NCBI GenBank assembly: GCA_033442325.1
Contig: JAWQFM010000024.1
Coordinates: 571,716-635,715 of the forward strand
From: Salpingoeca rosetta
Lineage: Eukaryota; Protista; Choanoflagellata
Direction of reading: 5' to 3'
DNA length: 64,000 nt
In this document: positions 156 to 64,000 of the stretch, one piece after another
Position numbering within the stretch: position 1 is the first letter of the stretch
Layout of the letters: the number at the start of each line of letters is the position of its first letter
Made by a program: the position numbers and the translations under genes
Notes under the pieces: model-generated
What the model saw: only the letters and a program-made list of their open reading frames with translations
Told to the model about the DNA's origin: nothing
The model's database searches: none

Positions 156-3100
156 GCCACCGGCTCAACTCGCAGTCCGTGGTCATCACCATCACGGACG
201 GAGGCTCGACGCAGCCGGACCAAGAGATCCAGGACGAGGCAACGCGCCTGGAGAACACCGGCGCACTGCTGGTTGCCGTCGGTGTGGGTGCAAGCACCGA
301 TGATGAGCTGACGGAGCTTGGCATTCTCTCGCAGTCCCCAAACAGCATCTTTGACCTGGATGCGGCGGAGGAGGCATACAACAACGGCTCCGACACGTTT
401 AACCAACAGGTTTTGCAGCCCGTGTTCAACCCACCGCCAACAACGACGACAACCACAACGACCACGACCACGACCACTACAACCACCACAACCACAACTG
501 TGGTGACGACCACGTTGCCGTTGGAGCCACTCAACGCGTCCATGTTCCACCCGCTCGACGCAATTTTCATCCTGGATGGTTCGGGCAGTGTCACGCAGCC
601 CAACTGGGATCGCCAGGTGGACTTCCTCACCTCCGTTGTCAGCCTGATTCCCGTCTCTCTCGATGACATTCGGTACGCGGCGACATTGAGTCTGTGTGTG
701 CGTGTGTGCATGTGCGCTTGTGCGCGGGTGTGCATGTGTGTGTTTGCGTGTGCATGTGTGTGTGTGCGTGTGTGTGTGTGCGTGTGCGTGTGCGTATGAG
801 AGAAGATTGTGCGTGTGAGAGAGTGTGTTGGCCGAGCAGCATCCGCAAGTAGCACATGTGAGGTCCATTCTTTCGTGTCAATTTCCGCTCACACACTGCC
901 TTCTTCACACCGGGTCCTCTGTTTGCCTGTGTGCTGTCAGGGTCGGCGTGTGTGTGCTGTTGGGCAACGCGCAGACGCTGATTGACCTGAACGGCGCCAC
1001 CTCCCCCGGCGCTGTCGTTGCCGCAGTCAACGCGTACACGTACGAGAACTTTAACCCGTCTGCCACGGGCGAGGCTCTCAACCAGGTGCACACGTCCATG
1101 CTGCTTCAGGTACAGTCGAAGAAAGAGACAGGAAGAGATTTGGCCGGGAAGGGGGGGGGGGCCGCGATGTTGCTCAGTGGTTTGGGCAGGGAGGGTACTT
1201 GGCTTGCTTGCACGTTCAGCGAGCATGCGTGGTTCTGCGGTGATGAGTTTCTTTCGTGTGTCATGCGGTGTGGAGGCGCCTACGTGATGCTTGCAAGTCG
1301 CGTTCACCCCCTCCCACACACCTTGCCAAGTTGCCATGTCACGACTGAACACCCCCATGTTTCAATCACCAACACTATCATCACCGCCATCACCATTACG
1401 ATCGTCATCAGGCCAACGGGCGGCGGACGGATGTGCCTGCCGTTGTCGTCGTCATCACGGATGGTGACTCGCAGGAAACCGACGAGTATGTGCAGGAGCA
1501 GGCGGACATTGTGCGCTCTGGTGTTGACCGCATGTACAGCATCGGACTCGACACGACCGATCCCGAGCACGCTGCGGAGCAGCTGGTGGTTGCCGGCAGC
1601 GCTTCTCGCGTCTACGAGCTGTCCACGCTGGAGGGCCAGCTTGCCTCTGATCAGCCCGCGTTTGAGGAGTCTTTCATTGGGCCTGTCTTCATGGGCACTG
1701 CGCAGCCAGAGGCATCGTCATCATCAGCGGTCCCACTTCCGTCGTCCTCGTCCCCAGCGCCGCTCCCATCATCCTCGCGGGCGTCGTCTGCCGCGCTCAG
1801 CACATCCGCTATGCTCAGCAGCACCGTGGTGCCAACAAGCTCGATGCCAGCAGCCAGCACCCCACAACCAACGCCAACACCCTCCCCACAGCTGTGCGCG
1901 TTTCTTCCCACCGACATGGTGCTTGTGTTGGACGCGAGTGGGTCCGTGGGCCAGTCGCAGTTTGACGATCAGATCCAGGCTGCCATCGGCCTCCTTGAAG
2001 GTCTTCCCTTGGGTGGCAGCATCAGGTGTGTGTGAATGTGTTTTGCTTTGCTTGTTTGTGTATTTGCATGCTTGGCTGTGTTGTTTGTGTATTTGCTTGG
2101 TTTGTTTTGCTTGTTTGTGTATTTGCTTGCTTGCATGTGTATTTGCTTGCTTGCTTGTTTTTTGTTTTGTTTGTTTGCTGCCGCAAGCGTGCGTGCGTGC
2201 GTGGGCGTACCACCACACACGTTCCAGTTGCGTGCATGCATGCATTTCACTTTTTCCCCTCCAACCCCCCTCCCACTAGTCCTTTCGCAAAGCTTTGACG
2301 CCTTTCCTCACTCATGTCAACCACCATGCACAAACCACCATAAAACTCTTAGGGTTGCTGGTACTGAGATCAAGTCCTCCCCCGAGGTTGTGCTGACGTA
2401 CGACCAAGGCTCCAGCTACGACACAGCCGCTGCCACCCTGCAGTCCATTGCGTACGGTGGGAACCAGGGCTCAGCGGTCGTGGGTGCCCTCAACCTCGCA
2501 GCGTCCACCTTTGGCTCTGCTGCACGCAACCTCTTTGTTGTGTTCACGGACGGCGACCCTGCGGACGGGTTTGATGAGCTGCTGGCGCTTGTGTCCGACA
2601 TTCGAAGCACCGGCGACCTTGTGCAAGTGATTGGGCTGAGCGGGCCCGGTGGCACGTTCAACACGACAGCGCTCGCCCTGCTCTCGGATGCCAGCACGCC
2701 GTACACCACGCTCCCAGCGCTCTTGCAGCAGCAGCAGGACGGCACCGCGTTCGGCTCCTTTGTGCGGCCACTCCTCTGTATGCTGCCTTCCACCAGCAGC
2801 CCCCCCTCGTCCACCCTCCTGCCTTCCTCATCCATCCCGCTCATCTTGTCCTCGACGGTGCAACCATCGGCCTCATCCCTGGTCACCATCACGCCGTCGT
2901 CGTCCTTGGCGCTGCCCACACCCTCGCCAACACCGACACCCACGCCAACGCCGCCCTACTGCGACTTCCTTGACTTGGACGTCGCGGTTGTCATTGATGG
3001 TTCCGGTTCCGTGCCCCGCGCCCGCTTCGACGAGCTCAAGGCCTTCGCCTCGCAGTTCGTGTCTGAGCTGCCACTGGGCGTTGCAGGCTCAACCACGCGT

Positions 3101-48833: not shown

Positions 48834-49073
48834 TTGTGCAGTCAAGTCAAAGGCACGCTGTCGTCCATTGAGCAGATCTTCCTGCATTACAACGTGCCGT
48901 TTCTGCCAACAAATCAGAACGGCACTTCCAACTCTCAGGCCGCCCAAGGCATCAGGAGACGACACCCCTCACCTCCACGTTCACACGTGAACGCAGACGT
49001 GCCGCCAATTGACCTGTCGTCGATACAGAGAATGATGCAAGTGCTCGGGTGTAGCACCACCAGCACCACCACC

Positions 49074-49134
<61 letters not shown>

Positions 49135-52100
49135 CTAAGTATGCAACGGCTGCTGAGTGGGGATCGGCCTCACACGCGTCGCGCGACCATCATCTTCCCC
49201 ACACACCAGTCACGATGCAAACGAGGAAGAGATCCCGTCGCGATACGCCAAGTGCAGGCACGTGTACGCTCTCGAGCGTGTTGGCCGGGACCTGCGCTGG
49301 ATCTGCGAACAACGCCAGCTTAACCATTGCGTTCGAAGGCGAAACGACTGTCAACGGCTCTGGACAGGCAGCGGCAGCACTGCAGGGCATTTCGCGCTGG
49401 CTGACAAGGGCAAGGTTCACCGGGCACGTTCGGCGGCAGCCACTTGAATGGGTGGTACAACATGGGGACTGGGCAACCGTCACCTCGGTCGATATCCTTG
49501 GTCTGCAGTCACCCGGCTTCGACTTCAGCATTCTCAACCCTTTGCTGGACATCAAAGAGGTGCGCATGCAGGACAGCGACCAACTGCGAGAAATCACCAC
49601 GCAAGGGTTTGCCCACGCATCCCACCTCACCGCCCTGCGCCTGAGAAACAACACGCTCGCTTCCATACCGTCCAAGGCGTTTTCAGGCATGACAGCCGTA
49701 GTCGTGCTGGACCTGCTGCATAACCGCTTGAGTGCCATTGACCCCGCATGGTTCACGTCGCTGGTCTCCCTTGAGCGGCTGGTGTTCGGGCACAACATCA
49801 TCACAGCGGTCACCTCTGCGCACACGTTTCAACCCCTCATTGCCCTGGAGCGGCTCGACCTGTCCTACAACGACATCACCACCGTGTCTCACCACGCCCT
49901 AATGCCACTCTCGAAGCTGCTGGTGTTGGACCTTTCCAATAACCCGCTGCGCCAGCTGTCGCCAGCCTCGTTCGGCAGCATGACACTGCTTGAGACGATG
50001 GCCCTTCGCAGTGCACGCTTGCAGGCGCTTCCGCCACGCGTTTTTGCCGCAAACACCCGCCTCCGCGCGCTGGAACTCGAGGACAACCTCCTCAGCGCGC
50101 TGGACGAGGATGTGTTCCGCGGTATGACCACCCTGCGTCGGCTGCTGCTCGTCAATAATTTGCTCTCCTCCCTGCCCGAGCGCATATTTCGGGACATGCA
50201 CGAGCTGCGTTTCCTGAGCTTGTCCCTGAACAGGCTCACCTCGCTGCCACCAGCCCTGTTCAACGCCTGCACCAACCTGCGACTTCTCACCATGCACGAG
50301 AACGAGCTGACCTCGTTGCCACCCAATATTTTCCAAGCTGCAACCAGCATACAATTTCTGTATTTGACGAGCAACCGCTTGCGCAACCTTAGCCCCGTGC
50401 ACTTTGCTGGCATGTCCACCCTGCAAGTGCTGGATCTCGAGAACAACCACTTGCAGTCCTTCCACGCCGAAATCCCCTCCCTGACGACCCTGACCCTCAA
50501 CCACAATCCACTCACGTCATTGCCGGCAACCCTTGCCGTCAGCAGCAAGCTGCGCGAGCTACGCCTCAGTCGCCACCGAATCACGGCTTTTGATCTCACA
50601 TTTGCGTTTCGCTCCACGCAGCTGCGCGACTTGCAGTTGGATGCCGCCCCCGACGTGCATTCCGTGGGCACCGTTGACGCGGCTCATCCCCCACCACAGA
50701 CACAGGCGGCCAAAGATCTGCGCTCGCTCAGCCTTCTCAATGTGGACGTGCGCGACGTCCTTCAGTACCTGCAAGAGCTGCCGCCCCTCCACCTCAACAC
50801 AGTCCGGCTTGGGTGGCCCACTGCCGACGCCGGCTCACTTCCACTACAGCAGATCTGCCATCTATTGGCCGAGGACGTGCATGAGTTTGCGCTTGTCAAC
50901 ACCAGGCACGCGGAGATCCACCTGTGCCCTGACAAGAGCTTCAGCACCGTGTTCGTGCAAGACAACGCCTTTCTCAACAAGATCAGTGTTGCAAACGGCT
51001 TGCGCAACCTCAACGCCTCCGGGTGCCGGCAGCTCAGCGCCCTTGATGTGCCGTTTGTAGACGTGCTTGATGTGAGCGAGACCAGTGTCCACCCGAGTGC
51101 TGGGCTGTGTACGCGGTGGGGTCGCCGTACTCTGTTTGCTCGACATGCTCGCAGGGACTCGCTCACACTGGATGAGGTGTTACCGGCCTTGCAACGCTGT
51201 GTTCGAACTGTTAACGTGCTCGACTTGGCGCACTCTGCCTGGCTGGACCATCCTGGCAAGCTGAACAACGCTCTCGGTGAGACGGTCGCGCTCTCAGACA
51301 AGCGGCTGGCAACGCTCGGCTTTGATCCAATCCATTCTCGAGCAGCGCCACCTCTACTTCAAGTGCAGGGGACGCCAGTGGAGTGTAGCCTGCAGCTGCG
51401 GAGTGACACGTTTCGCTTGCAGGACAACCCCACCGACCTGTTGGCCGAGGTTGTGTACACCTTCCACTGCACGTGCGCACGCGGTTTCAAGCTGACGTCA
51501 GGCGGGCGGTGCGTGGTGGACAACCCAGACATTGCCGGCATTGCCGTTGGCTCTGTGATTGGCGGGCTGTTCTTTGGCCTGTTTGTGGCGTGGCTGTCAC
51601 GCCGCTACCGTGGCCTGACCAAGCGCATTGACCTGCAGGAGCAGCTGCTGGTGGAGCGAGACGAGGAGGTGATGGCGCTCAAGAAGGCTTGGGAAATTGA
51701 GTACGATGAGCTGAGGATGATCAAGCGTGTTGCTGCGGGTGCGTTTGGCGTGGTGTTTGAGGCAGAGTGGGACACGGTGATGGTGGCAGTGAAAGTGCTG
51801 CAGCAAGCCGTCATGGCGTTTGACGAGAGCACGGTGCTTGAGTTTGAGAAGGAGGTGGAGTTCCTGCAGCGGACACGGCACCCGAATGTGGTGCGATTCT
51901 TTGGCGCGGGCACAGACCCCAACGGCAGCCCGTTCCTGGTGCTGGAGTTTGTGGCAATGGGATCACTAAAGGATCTGCTGGGGAAGGACATGGACAAAGT
52001 GTTGATGGAAGTGAGGAGCAGGAAGGTTGAGGAGAGCAACAGCAGCAGTGGTGGTGTCAGGGATGATGTGAACAGTGTGTGGGAGTTGAAGCTGCGCTTG

Positions 52101-52783
52101 CTGCGTGACATTGCGAGTGGCATGGCTTTTATCCACAGTCTGGACCAGATGCATCGGTGAGTGTGTGTATGCGTGTGTGTTTGCGTGTGTGTGTGTGTGC
52201 GTTTGTGTGTGTTTGTGTATGTGCGTTTGAAGCTGCGTTTCTATGTTTGCATGCAGGTACGCACTCTTGCCCACTGCACCATCCTACCCTCAACCCACCA
52301 CCACTTCCACACTCATTCACACCCACAGAGACCTGAAGAGCGGCAACGTGCTGGTGTCATCGTCGCTTCGCGCCAAAATCACGGATTTCGGGTCCATTCG
52401 CCAGTGCTTTACACGTGGTGGCGGTGGAGGTAGCGGCAGAGCCCACGGCAGCAGCCACACTCGCCTGTCGTCCAGCCAAGCTGACGATGACCCGCAATAC
52501 AGCCAGCGCACTGGACTGCAGACAATGACGAGCATGACGCTGACGGCTGGCGTGGGCACGCCGCTGTACATGGCGCCAGAGGCATTGATGGGTGACAAGT
52601 ACAGCTTCGGCGCAGACGTGTTCAGCTTTGGCGTGTTGATGTGGGAGGTGGCGACACAGCGCACCACCGGATCTGATTGCGCAGGAGAAGGGGGGCGACT
52701 TCAGGGGCCCCCTGCTGGCAGCCATCGCGACGCTCCTGACTGAGGGCAAGCGCCTCAAATTTGGCGACATGGATGGTGAGTCC

Positions 52784-53537: not shown

Positions 53538-55299
53538 TCATGAGTGCAAATCCAGCCACACGTACAGTGATGGTACATGTTTCATTTGCAGCGAAGATGG
53601 CAGTTGCATCTGCTCTTTGTTGAAGTGTACAGGCACAAACTCTGGTCTGTCAAGGAGCGCCTCCCAATAGTCGCTGAGCGAGTGTTCCGTGTTATGACGG
53701 TAGTCCAGGTAGTAGGAGCACACGAAAAAGTGTCGCAAACCGTACATGGCCGCTTCTGGCACAAGCTTGCCTTCACGGATGGCAGTTTGCAGCTCCTGCA
53801 CCACTGCCACTTCGTCTTGGATGTCGTGAGCGTGGCTTCCATGTGCATCCTGCAGAATCAGTTGCTCGTACACCAGCTCCAACAAGGAGAACACTTGGGC
53901 AACCCTGAGGTTGTGACACTCGCATCGGCGCAGGACGGTTGTGGTGGTGCTGTTTCCTTGCGGCAACACGGTCCTGACAAACTCCTCCAAACTCTTCTGC
54001 AGCATTGCCTCCACAGATATCCCACGGCTGGTTCTTGCGGGTTCGCTGCCGTCGTCCGTGTCCGCGCGATCGCTGTCCAGGTTCAGGCTTCCATCGCCAT
54101 GCACTTGTGCAAGGCGTGTCCTGAGTTGCAGCACAAGCACCTCGAGTGCTCCGCGCAGCTCGTCGACCCTCTGCCTCAACTCAGATGCGGTCGTCATTGC
54201 GTCCTTGCGTTGGGGCGGAATGTCCTGCCAGAGATTCGCATAGCGGCGCTGCAGCTCGTGGCACATTTGCAAAAAGTGTTCGCCCTGCTCTCGCCCAAAA
54301 CGGAAACCAAAGGTGGCTGGTTCCACGGGGCGGAAGCCCACCTTGCCCACAAACGTGTGCTGCAGAAGAATGTCCTGCACAGCTTGCCAGTTAGCGACGA
54401 GCTGATTGCCACTGCCAACACTGGTGTGCGCATACACGTGAGCAAGGACGTCTTCCGTCACCACGGCCGACACCACAAGCTGCGGGCGCGCCCGCGTCAC
54501 GCTGACGTTGGGAACGACGATGGACGCTCCACTCGCGTGCTGCACCGCCCTCTGCGCATTCACGCTCTCCTCGCACGTGGCCAACACGTGTTCAATGTGC
54601 TCGGTCTGAATGGCTGCAAGCCTTCGCAGCATAAAGTACAAGTGGCGTCCGCTTCCGCTGTCTGAGAGGAGAGAGAACCCCACGGGCATGTCGTCGTTCA
54701 TGGAGGGCATGCGCTGCAGTGTCGTGCAGTCCATGCGGCCAAACTCGGCCTCCTCGTCACGCACGAGCGTTCCATTAGCGGACACAGTCACACCACCAAA
54801 CACCAGCGCTTGATGCTCAACAACCTCATTCCAGGCCTGCTGGAATGCGTGAAAGCAGCGCTGTGCATCTTCGCCACGGCCACTCCCTTGCATTTGCTGA
54901 ATCAGTGCTGCATGCGTCATGGCATCAGCACCCTCCGTTTCTCCGCGGGAGATCACCTTGTCCTCAAAGTGCTGTCGAACACGAATGTACCACGCAGTCA
55001 ACGGAACGATCAGACGACAGAATGGCAGAACATGTCGCATGCGTGCACACGTGCCAATGAGTGGGAACTGGCGTTGCGCGTGGGTGTCGTTTGCGTACGC
55101 CGCCAGCAGTGACCCGGCATCAGGCTGCTTCGCAACACGCCAACAGCCCCAAAGCACGCCTTCGTCTTCTTCTTCTGCCATATCCTCCGCGTCGTTGGTA
55201 TGGTTGTCGTGGATGTTGTTCTGAGTGTCTTCACCATCACCATCACCATCACCATCACCAACATCAGGAACAGGGTCATCACCATCATCATCCTCATCC

Positions 55300-55335
<36 letters not shown>

Positions 55336-58300
55336 CCACCACCATCACCACCATTGGCAGCACCATCAGTATTGTCGTCAGTACCAGCACCACTCGCAAC
55401 ACTTCGACGCTCAAATACTTGGCGGGTCAGCCAGTTGCTGCGAGCACCGTGCTGGCGGTTGAGGTCCGATATGATGGCGTCGCCGCACTGCTGGGGATTC
55501 GTGCCAATGACCTGCTCTGCTAGTGCATGGAAGGCTTGCTCAAAGGCACCGCGTCCTTGCTCCGTGCGCAGGTCTGCATCCAGCGGAACTGATGCCGCCT
55601 CATCACCGGGCACAGGGTGCATGAGACGCTGCGCAATACGGTTTACAAGTCCACTCACGGCACGTGTGTTCGCATCAAGCGTGGTCTCCAGCCTCTCGAG
55701 CACGCCCACAATGCGACGAAGAAGCGCAGCCGCCGAGCTCTGCTCGGTGGCAAACGGAAGCTGCTCATTTAGGAGGCGACGCACAGCGGCATCAGACGCA
55801 GCGTCTCGGCACGCAGCGACAAGCAAGCTTGCATGCACGATCATGTCCAAGACGCCAGCGCTGCGTGCAGACAGGTGTCGAACTCCTTCACCGTCTCGTT
55901 GCAAATTTTGGAACGCAAGGGGGAAGTATCCTCGCTGCTGTCTCTGATGCTGAGGTCGCTGCTGCTGCTGCTGTTGTCGGAGGTGGTGGGTGTTGAGGTA
56001 ATGAAAGGGTGGTGGTGCAATCATGCCACGTCCAGCGACGCGGTTGTGCCCAGATTCTCTTCCGATGGGACTTCCACACCGCGCGCAGGTTCCACGGCCG
56101 CTCAATTGTCCACAATCACCAACAGCATACATTTCTCCACATTGGCATTTGTAGGTTGCTGAGCGGTCACGCACTGCGTTGATGGCGCCACTTGCTTCGT
56201 CGTTTGCGGATGCAGGCACGAACAGTGGGGACATGTCTTGAGGTGGTTGTGCAAGCATATGGAGAAGCCCGAGGTCCCTGCCTTCTCGCTCAGCATCGAG
56301 CAAGACACTCGCCAAGTGCAACACGAGCAGTCGCGCGTGCTCGAGGCGCTGGTTCAACAAGGTTCTCTCCGCTTCGCTGTCCGCCCGCAAGTTTGTGCCC
56401 CACACTTGGTGGCGTGGAAGGCGGTTAATGACCGCCGTCATGGCCTCGTGATGGGCTGGGGCGACTGTGAACACCGGGTGATTGAGGACAGCCGGTCGCG
56501 CTTCATCCGCAATCGGACGCATGTTCATGCGGGCCATGACATTGGCAACAACGCCCGGTCCAACGTCCGGTCCAACGTCTGCCCCAGCTGGCTGTTGCTG
56601 CTGTGGGTTGTGCTGTTGGTGGTGCTGTTGGTGCATTCGAAGCTGATTCCACTGTGCAAATGAGGCGGCTTGGCTGGGCACGGCAAAAGGAATGAAAGGC
56701 ACGAGCCAGGCATCCTGGTCCGGCCACTCGAGGCTGGTCAGCCACGGCAGGCGCCGCTCGTGCAATTGCAGAACGGCCCGAAGTCCCTGCAGGTCGCGGT
56801 TCTGTCGAAGGGATTTGAGCAGGAAGAGGCGACGTTGCTTCAAACTTGGTGGTGCAGCCTGCATTGGCGTATCGTCATCGCCAAACAGCATTTGCAAAAC
56901 GTCTGGAAACAGGTCGTCCTCCCGTTGCTCAAGGAGTGCATCGGCAATGAGGCGGATGCATGTGCGCTGCACGGCCACCCCAACAGCTGCATCACGCACC
57001 GTCTCCCTAGTGAAAACGCCGCGATCGTCCACCTGCTGTACGGCATCGAGACAGCGCGCAAGCACCCCTTGCACGCACAGAACAGCGACAGCGGGGGCAG
57101 CCTGGAGCATGCCTGGCAACACTGCGCCCTCAAGCACGTCCACGGTGAGCACAAGCATGGGCGAGCTTCGGGTGGCATCAAAGTCATTTGCACCCAAGAC
57201 AGCAGCCATTCCAGCAAAGAGTGGTCCCGGTGGCTGTGTCATCAAGGACTCAACGTCCTGAGCGCCTGTAGCAAACTTCAACACCGCTGTTCGCACTGCG
57301 CTGCCCGTGTGTGGGAGCCAGAGGTGAGCCTGTGACACTGCCCGCTCCGTGCGTTGCGTGGTGGCAGCCTCCTCCTGCGGCAACTGCTGGATGTCGGCCA
57401 AGCCGCGGAGCGGTCCTCGGCACAACGGGCACGGTTGCGAGAGCTGCACACATTGCTCAAGGCAGCTGTAGCAGAACGCGTGCTGGCAGGCGATGACGCG
57501 GTGTGTGAGCGAGTTTCCCAAGCACACACTGCACGCGTCTCGTGCAGCATGGGTGGTTCTGCGGCACAAAATCCCCAGGAGCTTCCGTTGTACATTGTGC
57601 CCCATGGCAGAAAAGCCAAGGTCCAGCAGCTGGCTGAACAGCGCCAGGGCATCCGACACCAGCCGTCGACGGGGCTCAGCAATCTCCCACAGCCTCTCGT
57701 CTTCCGCACACACGCTCTTGATGAACGTGGTGAGCGGCGTGGGTGAAGCAAACAGCGCGTCGATATCGCGGACGAGCGGGCGAACGGCAAGCTGCGGGTT
57801 TCGCTGCCAACCGCACAGCAGCGCATTGAGCACGTTTGCGCGGAGCACCTGTGCTGGCGCCACAGCAACGGCTGCGGGCGTAATGCCACCGGTCGTGTCA
57901 GTGGCGGTTCTGTTGCCACTGCCAAATCGGCGAACGCGTAGCGCGCTGTCGCGTGAGCGACTGTCGATCAGACCGCTGTCACGTGCGGCAACAGGACCAC
58001 CTGTTCGCTGGGCGGACCGGACGCGAACTAACGCTGCCAGGTGCTGGTTGAGAGTTCGGGCAGCATAGGCTTCGGTAACACCCTCCGCAGTGTTACCATG
58101 GTCCATTGCGCGATTGAAGCGTTTCACAATGTCCTGGCACACGAGTCGCACGAGAGTGGTGGAGGCATCACTGGGGGCAACACTGCCATGCCCGGTGCCA
58201 TCAATGTCCAGGCCACAATCATCAAGTATGTCTTCACCGTCGTCATCATCATGGTCACCGGCGTCTTTATCCTGTACACTGCCTTCGTCGTCGTAATCGT

Positions 58301-61300
58301 CGTAATCGTCGTAATCGTCGTCATCATCATCGTCACCAGCATCATTGGCAAGATGCGCACCCCTGCCTCGTCTGCGCTGCAGTGAACTCATGTTGAGCAG
58401 ATTGACGTGTGTGTTCGCTCGACGTGCAAGCGAGAGGAGACCAAAGAAAGCGCAGAGAGTGTCCTCATTGTCTTGAAGTATCTGCAATGCACGCTCGAGT
58501 TGATGCACGTTCGTGATTTGCGTCAGCTGGCCAACACACATGCGCAGTCCACACCAGATGTCCCGCGTGCTTGCGCCGGCGTGAAGGTCCTTGAAACGAA
58601 CCCAATCAACGAGCAGAAGCGCGCCCACGCACCGCGTGAGCGTCGTAACACTCGATGACGGAGGTGCAGACGTGGTAGAAGCCTCCTGACTGCCGAGTCC
58701 AACAGTCGCCAGGGTGACATACGCATCCAAGCGCACGACGCGGTCTGAACTGCTGGGCAGTTGCTCCAGCACAGCAAACAGCGCTTCCGACAGCGGCAGC
58801 ACGCTGTTGTACGAGACGTGCTTCTCTGGCAGCTGCAGCGACATTGCACCAAGCTGGGTGTCGATACCATTGCTGCTGCTGCCAACGACGCTGCTGCTGG
58901 GGCCAAACGCGTCCAACAAGCCGGGGAACATGCCAGTGACCATCCCGGCATATGTGCGCTCGGGAATGTGCAGCTCAGCCAGGATGGCGCGTGCGTCTGC
59001 ATCGGCCACCTGCGTGGCGTTTGGAACGGAATGGAAGCGCTCCAAGTGGAAGAGAACGCGCGCAATCGCGGAGAGCACCGTCTCCCGCACGCTGGTCACC
59101 AGCCGTTGCGAAAACGTGCCAAAGGTTGGCTGGTGCATGTCTTCCCCAGCAAGCCGGGTTACCCACGCAGGCGCATCATCCAGCGCTTGCACAGCGGCAA
59201 GTGCAATGCACTCGCGAAAACCGCGTGCCATCGCTGCCTGGCCGTGATGTGATCCTGCAGAACTGCCGGCGCCACGGGTGTCCATAGTGTCAAGTTGGCG
59301 CGCGTGGTGGTGCGGGAAAAGGCGCTGCATTGACGACCGCGCGCAGTCCAGCTGGTGCTGAACATGTGAGAAGTTCATTCGCGAGTAGCACCACCACCAC
59401 ATGCCTTCCTCGCGGACGAGATGCTGGTAGAACAGGAGCGAGTGCTCGTCATCCCGCACGGCACTCTTCAGAGACTTGCTGAACAGGTTCAACAGAGCAC
59501 GGTTGGTGCGGTCGGCGGGTGGCATGTGACGATGAGCCACGTCACGCGTTCGCCCTGCTTGCAGCTCTGCAGCTGTACCAGCAGACAGCAAGCCCGACAA
59601 GTCGTCGCAATAGTGCATGTGCCAACCCGGTGAGGCCATGATTGTCCTGAGCAGCGCCAACTCCTTGGTGTGCTCCTTGTGCTCCTTGGTCGTGGAGTGC
59701 ATGTGAATGCACAGGATGAGACGTCGAGGATGTGTTTTCTGCTGTCGCATTGGAGGACTGCCGTGCCGCAGACGCTGGTGTAGCTGGTGGCCCTCGTGCT
59801 GATCGTGCTGATCGTGCTGATCTTGCTGACATCCTTGTCGCTCTTGCTGTTCCTGCCCCCTTTGATGCCATCCTTGTCGCTGGTGCTGATGTTCAAGGAC
59901 AGCAATGTGCCCTTGATCAGAGGCAGGTGTGTTGAGAAGATGCTTGATTTTGTCCTGCGTGAAGGTAAAGTGGCGCAGGTCGCTGAGCGAGAACTGAACG
60001 ACCAGCGTACCGTTGTTGGGCGTTGTCCGCCATGCCTCATTCAGGCGGTGAGTCAGGGCGGCTTCAGACCTCACGTCGCACAGGCGCAGTGTGGAATGGT
60101 TTGGTAGCTCTGTAAAAGGGTGGAAGATGGCTGAGCGCGTGACCACGATGAGTTTTCGGACCGCAGCCCCGTTGGTGTGCGCAGATGTGCTTGCGGTTGC
60201 CTCGCGGCTGCCGCCGCTATCATCGGCATCGCGCATGTCGTCGCGGCCAGCATTGGCACCACTTTCTCCAACGCTGTCATCACCATCACCATCACCATCA
60301 TCACCATCGTCAGCATCATCATCATCGTCATGGTCAGCAAGGTTGCCGTCGTTGTTGTTGTCATCATCTTCGAACCAGCCAATGTGCTGCAGTAGAAGAG
60401 CAAGGGAATGATGGCTGGCACTGCGCATGTATTCTTCAAACACGGCACGCTTGTCGCGGCTCAACTCGTCCCTGTCTGACACTGAGGAAGAGAGCGACGC
60501 CACAAACTGAAGGGACATGAGGTTCACCAGCCCTTGCCGCACCACATCAAAGGCGTCGTGTTGGTGGTCCGCAGACATTGGCAGTGCCGCTGCCATCGCG
60601 CCACCTCGACTCGGGTCATGGCGCAAGTACTTGAGCAGCAGGCTTGGCACCAGGTTGTCGCTGTAGCAAGGGATGGCCCTCGTCTTGTCCTGCAGCGTTA
60701 CGGTGGACGTGTCCTGACCACGCGCAACGATGCGCGTGAGCCAGTTCTCCACCTGCGCGCACACGTCCCGCTGGTCCCTCGTCAACGCGTCTGTGAAGCT
60801 GAGCAGGTACTTCTCGAAGCGGTTGAGAAAGGGTGGGTCATACGTCTGCATCTTCTCGCGATCCATCAGCACGACGCAGCGGAACGTGTCGTGCACGGGA
60901 CACAAGGGGTTGCTGTAAGAGCCCAAGGCAATGGTGCAGTTGCGGCGACCCTGAATGACGGTGTAGCTCTGGTTCAGCATGTCGTACAGGCTGCCATAGG
61001 CGGAATCAAGATCCACCAGCACCAGCATGCCACCATGCTCCATCTTCACAATGATCCGGCTCAGCACGTCGTACGCGTGGTCCTCGCTGCTCATGTCCGC
61101 CTCAAACTGACTGCCGCGGATGATGAGAGCGTTGCTCGTGTCCAAGATGGACAGCGCTGCATCACCAACAGAACCAATGAGGAGATGGCGCGCTTCAAAG
61201 TCGCTCAGGTTCTCTTTGATGCACTCTGACATCCTGCTGCTGGCCGCTTCCAACGCGGTGTGCAGGTCGACTGCGAGCTCAACCAGATTGTGCTGTACCA

Positions 61301-64000
61301 AGTGCTGAACAACAAGCCGGAACATGAGTGCATGCTCGCTCTGTTGCTGCGGGTGGGAAGTGGCGTCAACACCTCCATTATCTGCTGGTGCCTCCCCACC
61401 AGCGTCCCCAACAGCACCGCTGCCATATCCTTCGCCCACACCGTCGTGGTGGCCGCTGCCAGCATTGGCACTGCCAAGCGTGCCGGAGAAGTTTCGGATG
61501 AGGGCGGTGGCAAGCACACTCGCCCCCAAACGCTGTTGGTTCCGACACACAGTCTTGCAGGCGCTGTAAAAGTCGCGAAGGCCAAAGAAGCAGCGCTTGT
61601 GCTTCCCGCCCAATCTGCTGTCAGTGCGTGTTTTGATATACTTGCTGAACGCGTCAGCCAGAGCACGCAGAGTAATATCAAGCAGCCTCAACCTCGAAGA
61701 CGCCCGTGGCCTCAGACCATCTGTCAGGCGAGGCCCGCTGCCACGTTGTGGATGCCCGTCGCTGCTGTGCGCACTGGCATGCCCGTCGCTGGACTGCGAG
61801 CGAAAGCTCTGCGCAATTGCGTCAGCGGTGCTCCGTAGCTCATCACGAGACAGCTCTGGTCGGGAGATGTGCAGTGCGCGGTTCATCTTCGCCGCATCGA
61901 GCGCCCAGTTGGAGATACCAACGACGCCAACACGGAGCTCGCTGCCGTCTGGCGGCTCAAGTTTTGCATGCAGCACCTTGAGCGGGTTGTGGCGCGAGTA
62001 CTCGGCCAGTCCAACCTCATCCAGCACCACCACGGGCAGCACGTTGTCGTTGCTGGCTGTTTGCAGATACGCTTCCGCACGAGCAAACACCTGCAGGATA
62101 CCCTCGCTCGTCGCCTCAACGCTGCCTTGGTACGCAAACACGGTGATGCCCGGGTACAACTTGAGCAGCGGGTCGCGCGAGTCTGGGCCGCGGAGACTGT
62201 TGTTGACGAGGCTCATGCTCACCGTCTTGCTGTTGCCCGGCTTACCGACGAGGAAGATGGGGATGCGGTTGAGCAGCGACACGACAATGGAAAACGTGTT
62301 CTCCAGCAAGGCCGCGTTCTCCGCCAAGTTCTGGAACTGCGGTGGCCGCCTGTCCATGCGGTCCACCATGTCCAGCTGCTCCTGATGCATGAACTTCAAC
62401 AATGCTTTGGCTTTTGCCTGCTGCTCATCACCACCAATGCATCTCCTCAGTAGCGTTCGGCGTTGCGTATTGTCGGACAGGCGCACCATGTAGCACTGCA
62501 TGAGCGACAGCCACGCGGCGTGCATGTTCGCCGTGAGCTCCGCCACGCGGACGTCACGCACGCACTTGTTGTGCGCAAGATCGCCACGGCGCTGCCGCCA
62601 CGTCTTGAAGAACTTGAAGAGCGTGCAGAAGCGCTTGACGTCACGCAAGCTGATCATGTGGTCTGTCTGCGTCCTCAAGAAGTCGTGGCACTGATACAGC
62701 ATGTGCACGACTGCGTTCTTCTCGTCCTGGTCCAGCCCAAGGCCGTCCACCATGCTGCCCATGTACAGTCGCTCGTCGCCAGCGGACAGCTCGCCAAAGT
62801 CCCACACGTACGGCAGCATCGCCTCCGGCAGCGGGTGCACGCGGTACATGAGGTGCGACTGCGCGTCAATGGGCTGGCGCTCCGTGGTGACCAGCCCTGG
62901 TGTTGGTGATGGGCGGTCACGGCGCTTGTACGGGTTGCACGCAGCCGCAATCTTGACGTTGTCCGGGATGGAGCGGGAGCCGCAGCGGCGGCGCACAATG
63001 ATGTCGGACAGCAGGTCGAGGTGTTCGCACGTGTTGATCTCGTCAAGGAAGACCCACACGGTCTTGCCTGCTGATTCTGCCACTGCCGCTGCCGTGGCAC
63101 GTGTGATGGCTGCGTTGACGTAAGCAACAATGTCCTGTGCAGTGGTGCCTGCATGGATGGCCAACGCACCGTCGTACACCACGTCGCGACGCATGTCTGC
63201 CAGCTGCTTGAAGAGGGACGTTTTGCCGCAACCTGCGTGGCCCATCAGAATGCACGGCACGTTGTTGGTGATGCGGATGTAGATCAGCACCATCTTCAGC
63301 ATGTTGTCCAGCGTCATGGCGTACTGGCCCTGCTCTCTGGTATTGGTGTGGTCAAGCAGATGCTGAACGCGCTCAAACAGCTCTTTCGAAGAGTGTGAAA
63401 CCATTGACCTGAGCGGCGCGAGCTGTGCCTCAAAGAAACGTTGCACCTCCTGTGGAACAGCCTGCGGGTCAGTGTAGAAAGGGTACACACACCCATCGTC
63501 AGCAGCGCACAGCATCCAGTGCGTCGCGCCTGATCCCGCGCCAGTCTGAATCCACGCCGGTACACGCTCCATGCGGCGCAGCATGTCATCTGTCATGGTT
63601 CCTTGCGAGTGCTGGTGGTGGTGCTGTGCTTGCCTCACTGCGTCGGCAGAAGGCACGGCAAACCGCCGAACTGTGTCCACCACAGCTGTGACCATGCCTC
63701 GGCGTATCTGGCGCGCTTGCTCTGGCGATAGCCCCATGTATGCGCAAAGCATCTGCTGTTGCACATACGCACTCGTGAACATGCGCGGCAGCTGCTGTGC
63801 TGTCACTCGAAGGAAAGCGTTGAGCTCGGCAAACGAGGCATGCCCCTCTTGCAGACGCGGGAAGTAGTGCTGAAGGAGCTCGAGGCAGCGCTCCCGCGGC
63901 AACGTTGGAATATCGACGAAGACTGTGGTGGCAATCTCTGCGCCGTACGTGAGGTGCGGCTCAACATATGCAGTGGACATGTCATTGGTGTGCAAGAGGT
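53538..64000 (-). CDS. RNF213/mysterin-like giant AAA+ ATPase / RING / RZ-finger E3 ubiquitin ligase (5' end beyond window; >10.4 kb single exon)
   Basis: The frame is open to the window edge. Motifs YAMTLDNMLKMVLI..R...VPCILMGHAGCGKT, WVFLDEINT, AACNPY, YRVHPLP, VWDFGEL, SLRDVKR, IPIFLVGKPGNSKT, VVVLDEVGLAE.S..NPLKVLH..LE, GISNWALDAAKMNR, FFGLRDFY, LYDMLNQ and PFLNRFEK are characteristic of the RNF213 dynein-like core. C3HC4 RING at ~57420-57533 and RZ finger at ~56045-56152. Confidence 0.92.
56045..56152 (-). other. RZ (RNF213-ZNFX1) finger
   Basis: YKCQCGEMYAVGDCGQLSGRGTCARCGSPIGRESGH compared with the family pattern C-x3-H..[VI]G[ED]CG......C..C...IGG..H. Confidence 0.85.
57420..57533 (-). 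other. C3HC4 RING finger of the RNF213-like protein
   Basis: CSVCLGNSLTHRVIACQHAFCYSCLEQCVQLSQPCPLCR. Confidence 0.9.

Follow-up and report, generated by a model that had tools for sequence, protein, structure and literature searches.

The analysed stretch of the Salpingoeca rosetta genome (64,000 nucleotides, C24:571716-635715 of a 55.4-Mb, 68-contig assembly; hereinafter the window, to which the coordinates below refer) ends within a giant gene on its minus strand. We assign this gene, hereinafter the C24 gene, with considerable confidence to the RNF213 (mysterin) family as a full-length, intact giant ATPase-ubiquitin ligase (E3), the ligase activity being predicted by analogy. The main features of the part inside the window are as follows.

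53538..64000, minus strand: RNF213-family gene, last 3,485 codons and the stop codon, from the reading of the open reading frame (ORF), with RNF213-only matches in the PDB (E 5e-87)
61800..63326, minus strand: two consecutive AAA+ modules equivalent to the active AAA3 and AAA4 of mouse and human RNF213 (residues 224-732 of the window-encoded part of the protein); phmmer E 3e-69, ~35-40% identity
63219..63242, minus strand: Walker A of the first active module, GHAGCGKT, from the alignment with mouse RNF213
63033..63059, minus strand: Walker B of the first active module, VWVFLDEIN, same alignment
62223..62246, minus strand: Walker A of the second active module, GKPGNSKT, same alignment
62010..62033, minus strand: Walker B of the second active module, VVVLDEVG, same alignment
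60735..61211, minus strand: next AAA module of RNF213, matched to 8s24 residues 3075-3239 (E 1e-16)
57420..57533, minus strand: C3HC4 RING (residues 4086-4123 of the full-length protein); Pfam zf-C3HC4
56172..56225, minus strand: conserved helix segment preceding the RZ finger (LFVPASANDEASGAINAV; with the F-x-P...D-[DE] motif common to RZ domains), from alignments and the RZ model
56046..56153, minus strand: RZ finger; Pfam PF20173, residue roles from PMC11549300 and PMC12075652
56145-56147, 56139-56141, 56085-56087 and 56076-56078, minus strand: RZ zinc ligands, namely the first Cys, the Cys at +2 and the CxxC pair, mapped on mammalian RNF213
56133-56135, minus strand: Glu at the position of the mammalian His ligand
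56112-56114, minus strand: RZ nucleophile Cys
56046-56048, minus strand: RZ base His

Inside the window, the ORF (53538..63995, minus strand) ends with a TGA stop at 53538-53540 and has no start, the codon before the listed TTG being one for Leu. The original prediction, made from the letters of the window, had asked for the frame to be extended past 64000, and it indeed continues into a complete protein: in the next 10 kb of the contig examined, the frame stays open for 1,977 codons, amounting to 5,462 codons in a single exon of contiguous genomic DNA with no splicing assumed. The first Met is encoded at window-equivalent positions 69786-69788, ~5.8 kb past the window end, yielding a protein of 5,416 amino acids (aa), of which the N-terminal 1,931 codons, up to 69788, lie outside the window; this start is supported because three paralogues align with the protein from residue 4 onward. 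An open frame of this length, together with the E-values of the family matches, is far beyond chance.

The family assignment is carried by the ATPase core. When the window-encoded part was compared with the PDB using phmmer, the only significant matches were RNF213 chains (6TAY and 8S24, E 3e-69 to 5e-87), and Pfam recognizes dynein-type AAA domains (AAA_7/AAA/AAA_5) at residues 227-324 of this part. Both Walker pairs are in register with those of mouse RNF213: in the first module, GHAGCGKT aligns with GETGCGKT and FLDEIN with FFDEAN; in the second, GKPGNSKT aligns with GKPGSSKS, and VVVLDEVGLAE is identical in the two proteins. The RNF213-type AAA core with two intact Walker A/B sets that had been called from the letters is thus borne out, and so is the hallmark of the family, a ring with two Walker-competent modules, AAA3 and AAA4. 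The remaining modules of the AAA ring, beyond the two active ones and the one that follows, are unrecognizable by sequence.

Downstream of the ring, the C3HC4 RING that had also been called passes the Pfam zf-C3HC4 model at residues 2155-2192 of the window-encoded part (22.5 bits, with a cut-off of 21). It follows the pattern C-x2-C-x11-C-x-H-x2-C-x2-C-x10-C-x2-C, and all eight ligands are invariant across the four paralogues of S. rosetta and the RING-bearing relatives, in rows with only 25-42% identity to the C24 gene. The spacing between the RING and the RZ finger is 462 aa, compared to 497 aa in the hemichordate RNF213 and 508 aa in human RNF213, as counted from C3997 (PMC6400562) and C4505 (PMC11549300). 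Nothing marks the RING itself as RNF213-like in particular: its closest match in the PDB is a herpesvirus RING, and the surrounding shell is not recognizably RNF213-like either.

The RZ finger matches ZnF_RZ-type PF20173 at residues 2606-2655 of the window-encoded part (36.8 bits, with a cut-off of 27; E 3e-9) and scores 44.7 bits in a six-frame scan of the genome, so that the profile match on which the original prediction had staked itself was obtained. Its pattern, C-Q-C-G-E-x6-G-D-C-G-x7-C-x2-C-x9-H, keeps the G[ED]C cysteine and the terminal His and has CxC in place of the Cx3H of the family, exactly as had been read from the letters. In terms of the human residues with assigned roles (C4505, H4509, C4516, C4525, C4528 and H4537; PMC11549300), C4505, the nucleophile C4516, C4525 and C4528 are all retained, and the base H4537 is retained but displaced downstream by one residue relative to the consensus. 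The zinc ligand H4509 is replaced by Glu, and there is an extra Cys at +2 from the first Cys. The set of four ligands, nucleophile Cys and base His that typifies the RZ of the RNF213 family is therefore present, with the second ligand being Cys at +2 rather than His at +4. The AlphaFold2 model of the region contains a helix and four strands, as described for the human RZ (PMC11549300), with moderate confidence (predicted local distance difference test, pLDDT, of 64).

Fingers of the CxC type are also found in Choanoeca perplexa and C. flexa, in many environmental eukaryote sequences, and in fungi (Mucoromycota; Glomeromycota/Endogonales), including Jimgerdemannia, Rhizophagus, Acaulospora and Racocetra; the RZ of a shark "rnf213-alpha-like" protein reads CSCGE, as in the C24 gene. 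Cx2C variants occur as well, and one finger carries both the extra Cys and the His. In alignment rows that are 17-42% identical to the C24 gene, no variation is seen at either upstream Cys, the nucleophile Cys or the CxxC. Fingers that lack the His all have the extra Cys, while the residue at the old His position varies (E/Y/F/A), which is why we interpret the Cys at +2 as a ligand replacement. The zinc site of this finger is accordingly likely to be all-Cys, judging from the alignments. Hence the predicted variant site stands as far as the replacement of the His ligand by Cys is concerned, but it is not unusual: the swap is a recurrent, conserved subtype of the RZ finger, found in choanoflagellates, fungi, a shark and environmental eukaryotes, rather than a peculiarity of the C24 gene. 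In the searchable literature, we found no discussion of this subtype. In mouse RNF213, each of the four zinc ligands, His included, is required for activity (PMC12075652); many lineages, the shark paralogue among them, thus naturally have Cys at +2 or +3 in place of a ligand that is essential in mouse. The base position is inconstant as well, being occupied by H, Y, Q or G, so that the base His is often replaced by Tyr, Gln or Gly, and these comparative facts should be useful to those who work on the enzyme.

By analogy with mouse and human RNF213, binding of ATP at the two Walker-competent AAA modules would switch on the E3 module. The RZ finger, predicted to be held by one zinc on four cysteines (C4548, C4550, C4568 and C4571), would take ubiquitin from the ubiquitin-conjugating enzyme (E2) onto Cys4559 and pass it to the substrate with His4581 as the general base, and the RING could be an accessory or second E2-handling site.

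Compared with mammalian RNF213 (6TAX, 8S24), the protein is of similar length (5,416 aa and 5,207 aa) and shows the same order of parts: a long N-arm, the AAA ring with two Walker-competent modules, the RING, the RZ finger ~460-510 aa later and a C-terminal domain. The ATPase cores match at E 5e-87, and the RZ fingers share the nucleophile Cys, the base His and three of the four zinc ligands. Unlike mammalian RNF213, the C24 gene has the Cys at +2 for the His ligand at +4 and the base His shifted by one residue, has no detectable CBM20, is intronless, carries three long acidic inserts, falls outside the deuterostome clade, and has an N-arm, an E3 shell and a C-terminal domain that cannot be recognized by sequence. 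Choanoeca perplexa (EukProt EP00045 P018322) and the giant proteins of Mucoromycota (Jimgerdemannia RUS33191.1) share the ATPase core and the CxC-type RZ, but they have no RING, and Choanoeca and Jimgerdemannia have Tyr in place of the base His. The invertebrate RNF213-like AAA giants of ~4,000-5,000 aa (cnidarians, molluscs, echinoderms and amphioxus) are 40-44% identical in the two active AAA modules; in contrast to the C24 gene, 114 of the 120 best matches showed neither a RING nor a convincing RZ. ZNFX1 has an RZ finger with the Cys/His dyad as well, but it is a superfamily 1 helicase with NFX1 fingers and a Miz/Z-RING, and Pfam scans of either part of the C24 protein detected no helicase or NFX1 family; the C24 protein is thus not a ZNFX1. 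It is an extension of the known RNF213 family, not a new kind of system.

Several observations weigh against the reading of this protein as an RNF213-family ligase. The base His lies one residue late, and it is missing in two sister paralogues (on contig C29) and in Choanoeca. On the ATPase tree, the C24 gene falls outside the deuterostome RNF213 clade and so is not RNF213 sensu stricto. A Foldseek search of the PDB with the RZ model (pLDDT 64) returned no match at E <= 0.001, only small zinc-ribbon look-alikes, and the AlphaFold2 model of the E3 module (671 aa, 10-row alignment) is unusable, with a pLDDT of 44.9. No similarity to mammalian RNF213 was detected in the E3 shell between the RING and the RZ: a word search with residues 2100-2700 of the window-encoded part (the E3 region) returned nothing, and a HMMER search with residues 2100-2870 against 1.84 billion representatives gave 93 weak hits confined to the two fingers, with no relative outside the genome at E < 1e-10; these searches came back blank because the shell has truly diverged. 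Comparison of the S. rosetta-type E3 region with animal RING+RZ proteins by hhalign yields a probability of 99.5%, in 183 columns around the RZ only, and the similarity reaches only ~70 columns past the RZ. The C-terminal 785 aa have no match in Pfam or in the PDB, including the RNF213 structures. The N-arm (~1,930 aa) shows no detectable similarity to mammalian RNF213, no PDB match and no Pfam family at E <= 0.1. The mammalian N-arm carries a CBM20 carbohydrate-binding domain (PMC11549300); a CBM20 in the N-arm of the C24 protein was considered and rejected at the level of sequence, given the absence of Pfam families and of BLASTP similarity to a CBM20-bearing relative (P0033). Pathogen recognition by RNF213 has been linked to the N-arm (PMC11549300), and an E2 site has been reported in the C-terminal domain (10.1101/2025.09.05.674436). 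To judge by sequence, the regions that would decide whether the two proteins do the same job are exactly the ones beyond comparison.

The genome encodes four intronless, RING-bearing members of the family: the C24 gene, two genes on C29 and one on C22, with the RZ finger readable in three of them. The three further paralogues are full-length, each with both Walker A motifs and the RING intact. The two C29 copies (C29a and C29b) have CPCGE...GNC...CARC fingers without the base His, so that, among the copies of the C24 type, it is found only in the C24 gene; in the C22 copy, the RZ region falls within an N run and is unreadable. Each of these three close paralogues has N runs within its E3/RZ region or immediately ahead of it (C22:1149449-1150530; C29:417481-417594; C29:880806-881372 and 883541-884046). 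The paralogues resemble the C24 gene most closely in the ATPase region (55-77% identity) and less so in the E3/C-terminal region (38-43%) and the N-arm (25-37%). Comparison of window positions 61000-63300 with C29:411-414k, C29:875-878k and C22:1142-1145k reveals mosaic tracts in the ATPase region (residues 2256-2336, 2476-2616 and 2860-3020 of the full-length protein) with 92-99% nucleotide identity, and third codon positions agree at 0.9-1.0 inside the tracts as opposed to 0.2-0.7 in the flanks. From the alignments, gene conversion limited to the ATPase modules seems to have acted between these scattered copies.

A fifth gene of the family (C3:258739-272078, examined as L031 and L025), hereinafter the C3 gene, is multi-exon. 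It includes a 1,870-codon ORF that matches mouse RNF213 at E 2.4e-29 and, at C3:269012-269131, an exon for a canonical RZ (GH...GEC...CPDC...GGLNH), the only canonical RZ in the genome. Attribution of this finger to a ZNFX1 was rejected, given that the neighbouring ORF matches RNF213 and not a helicase. No RING was detected in the C3 gene, whose exons were searched one at a time rather than as a joined spliced model, and its core is only 35% identical to that of the C24 gene.

In the ATPase-core tree, built under LG+C20 with a single exon of the C3 gene included, the four intronless copies of S. rosetta form one clade (support 100/99) that is the sister group of Choanoeca perplexa (100/99); Choanoeca perplexa and C. 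flexa are also the sources of the nearest named relatives of the C24 protein, in line with the prediction that the host is a bacterivorous protist, the source being a choanoflagellate relative of animals. The C3 exon groups with the RNF213 of marmot, shark and hemichordate (96/96), the branches being long on either side. A tree constrained to keep all choanoflagellate rows in one clade is marginally rejected by the approximately unbiased test (p = 0.026), for a group that was named after the tree was seen and again with long branches. Thus, the predicted kinship with RNF213 holds for the ATPase core, but the C24 gene is not the copy closest to animal RNF213: the C3 gene is closer, groups with deuterostome RNF213 and, judging from the tree, may be the true RNF213 orthologue of S. 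rosetta, differing from the C24 gene in being multi-exon, in its canonical RZ and in the lack of a detected RING, while sharing the family core and an RZ.

RING-bearing and RING-less members of the family are interleaved on the tree. In addition to deuterostome RNF213 and the C24-type copies, RING+RZ genes are represented by two giant AAA+RING+RZ genes of environmental eukaryotes (ERZ23486764 scaffold_3377 and JGI 3300038657 Ga0400656_000291, together L028 and L027), of which L028 falls with the C3 gene and deuterostome RNF213 and L027 with the C24 clade. These two genes are split by gaps of 44-60 bp between called ORFs, probably short introns; one of them has a CxC RZ with the base His and the other a Cx2C RZ without it. 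No RING is found in Choanoeca, in fungi, in a CBM20-bearing environmental relative, in the C3 gene and in most invertebrate "RNF213-like" giants. The presence of RING+RZ on both sides of the tree favours an ancestral pairing that would have been lost repeatedly. The family core, the RING and the RZ finger are all found in a choanoflagellate, which agrees with the original prediction that the family predates animals: the enzyme design, combining the ATPase motor, the RING and the catalytic-type RZ, is, by these comparisons, older than animals. Mysterin/RNF213 has been placed in "protochordates and vertebrates" (PMC6400562), and only the RZ domain of ZNFX1 has been traced back to choanoflagellates (bioRxiv 10.1101/2025.10.14.682297); that is the sole paper on RNF213 and choanoflagellates that we found, and the searchable literature yielded no paper on a non-animal RNF213. 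Database records already label fungal homologues as "RZ-type domain-containing protein" (for example, RUS33191.1).

The pairing of the RING with the RZ could instead be convergent, with the RING gained independently at a similar place in the lineage of S. rosetta. We consider this unlikely, although of the alternatives weighed here it comes closest to being credible: the RZ occurs without a RING in Choanoeca perplexa, fungal homologues, the CBM20-bearing environmental homologue and the C3 gene, and the RING is closer to that of a herpesvirus than to any other in the PDB. The distribution of RING+RZ on both sides of the tree (deuterostome RNF213 with L028, and the C24-type copies with L027) speaks against such a gain, as does the similar RING-to-RZ distance in the two lineages (462 and 497-508 aa); furthermore, repeated loss is no harder to envisage than repeated gain, and models of giant genes are often incomplete. 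An altogether different doubt concerns the RZ finger, which in the C24 lineage might be a structural relic, with the His ligand lost and the base His shifted, so that any ligase activity would come from the RING only. The need for all four zinc ligands in mouse RNF213 (PMC12075652) and the missing base His of C29a, C29b and the Choanoeca proteins are compatible with decay, but the invariance of the Cys at +2 wherever the His is missing, from fungi to sharks, against the varying residues (E/Y/F/A) at the old position, indicates replacement rather than decay, and the nucleophile Cys and the CxxC are invariant in a finger that passes the Pfam model. We therefore give the loss of RZ function very little credence.

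As for what the enzyme does, a part in dealing with bacteria would be plausible in an organism that feeds on them. The specific proposal that the C24 protein is an antibacterial sensor-effector that would coat cytosolic bacteria or phagosomal membranes and, like mammalian RNF213, ubiquitylate lipid A via the RZ finger, such that cell-autonomous ubiquitylation of lipopolysaccharide would predate animals, as the original prediction has it, goes considerably further and seems to us doubtful. In its favour, the protein retains an intact catalytic Cys/His dyad and both ATPase sites, the host eats bacteria, and the family is multi-copy, with N-arms (25-37%) and E3/C-terminal regions (38-43%) that have diverged while the ATPase cores were kept alike. 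Diverged outer parts around a uniform core are a pattern common in immune gene families. The positive selection on the N-terminus of primate RNF213 (PMC11549300) can be counted in favour of this proposal, too. Against it stand the undetectable CBM20, the N-arm and C-terminal domain unrelated in sequence to the mammalian ones, the non-immune roles of RNF213, for example in lipid droplets (PMC6400562), and the absence, beside the paralogues, of the leucine-rich repeat (LRR) receptor kinases that flank the C24 gene. A still broader scenario, to which we attach a correspondingly smaller probability, is that the RING-RZ-AAA ligase was an ancestral defence enzyme of opisthokonts or holozoans and in S. 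rosetta forms a small immune-like family (four intronless genes and the C3 gene), in which the recognition arms would be diversifying, gene conversion would keep the ATP switch uniform, and this copy, at least, would attach ubiquitin to lipids of the bacterial surface via its all-Cys RZ. For the C24 gene as an RNF213-family ligase, the reading that we prefer, the significance lies in the complete design, with an ATP-switched ring, a RING and an RZ finger with the Cys/His dyad, being already present in a unicellular relative of animals; S. rosetta can be grown with defined bacteria, so that the question of function is open to experiment.

Three further features of the window are as follows.

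60276-60368, minus strand: acidic (Asp-rich) run
58284..58337, minus strand: low-complexity insert rich in Asp and Tyr, separating the ATPase ring from the E3 module
53541..56045, minus strand: C-terminal domain that follows the RZ; identity to the paralogues 38-43%, and no detectable match to mammalian RNF213; includes an acidic run at 55275-55343

Such long Asp-rich and Asp/Tyr-rich runs between domains are also present in the N-arm beyond the window, and they gave spurious PDB hits (sigma-70, nucleophosmin).

Intronless open frames of 16-17 kb occur in the S. rosetta genome in the C24 gene and at C22:1134538-1151970 (the count for the latter includes an N run), and an environmental RNF213-like relative of ~3,800 aa (P0045) is likewise encoded in one uninterrupted ORF. 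Metagenomic homologues of ~4,000 aa were considered as possibly bacterial; this was rejected for the one contig examined, where sparse small ORFs and an adjacent reverse transcriptase suggest a eukaryote. A weak match to the ATPase core (E 2e-6) was found at C25:888210-888581 (minus strand), inside a 4,719-codon open frame.

The C24 gene is flanked on both sides by paralogous ORFs for receptors with LRR_8 and tyrosine-kinase-like domains (window positions 48834-52160, plus strand, and L008:7-3753, plus strand). A functional link to these receptors was rejected, the ORFs beside the paralogues not being LRR kinases. The ectodomains of the two receptors are ~40% identical, and the last ~240 aligned residues, a stretch that spans the end of the ectodomain, an apparent membrane-spanning stretch and the start of the kinase, are ~97% identical, indicating another mosaic.

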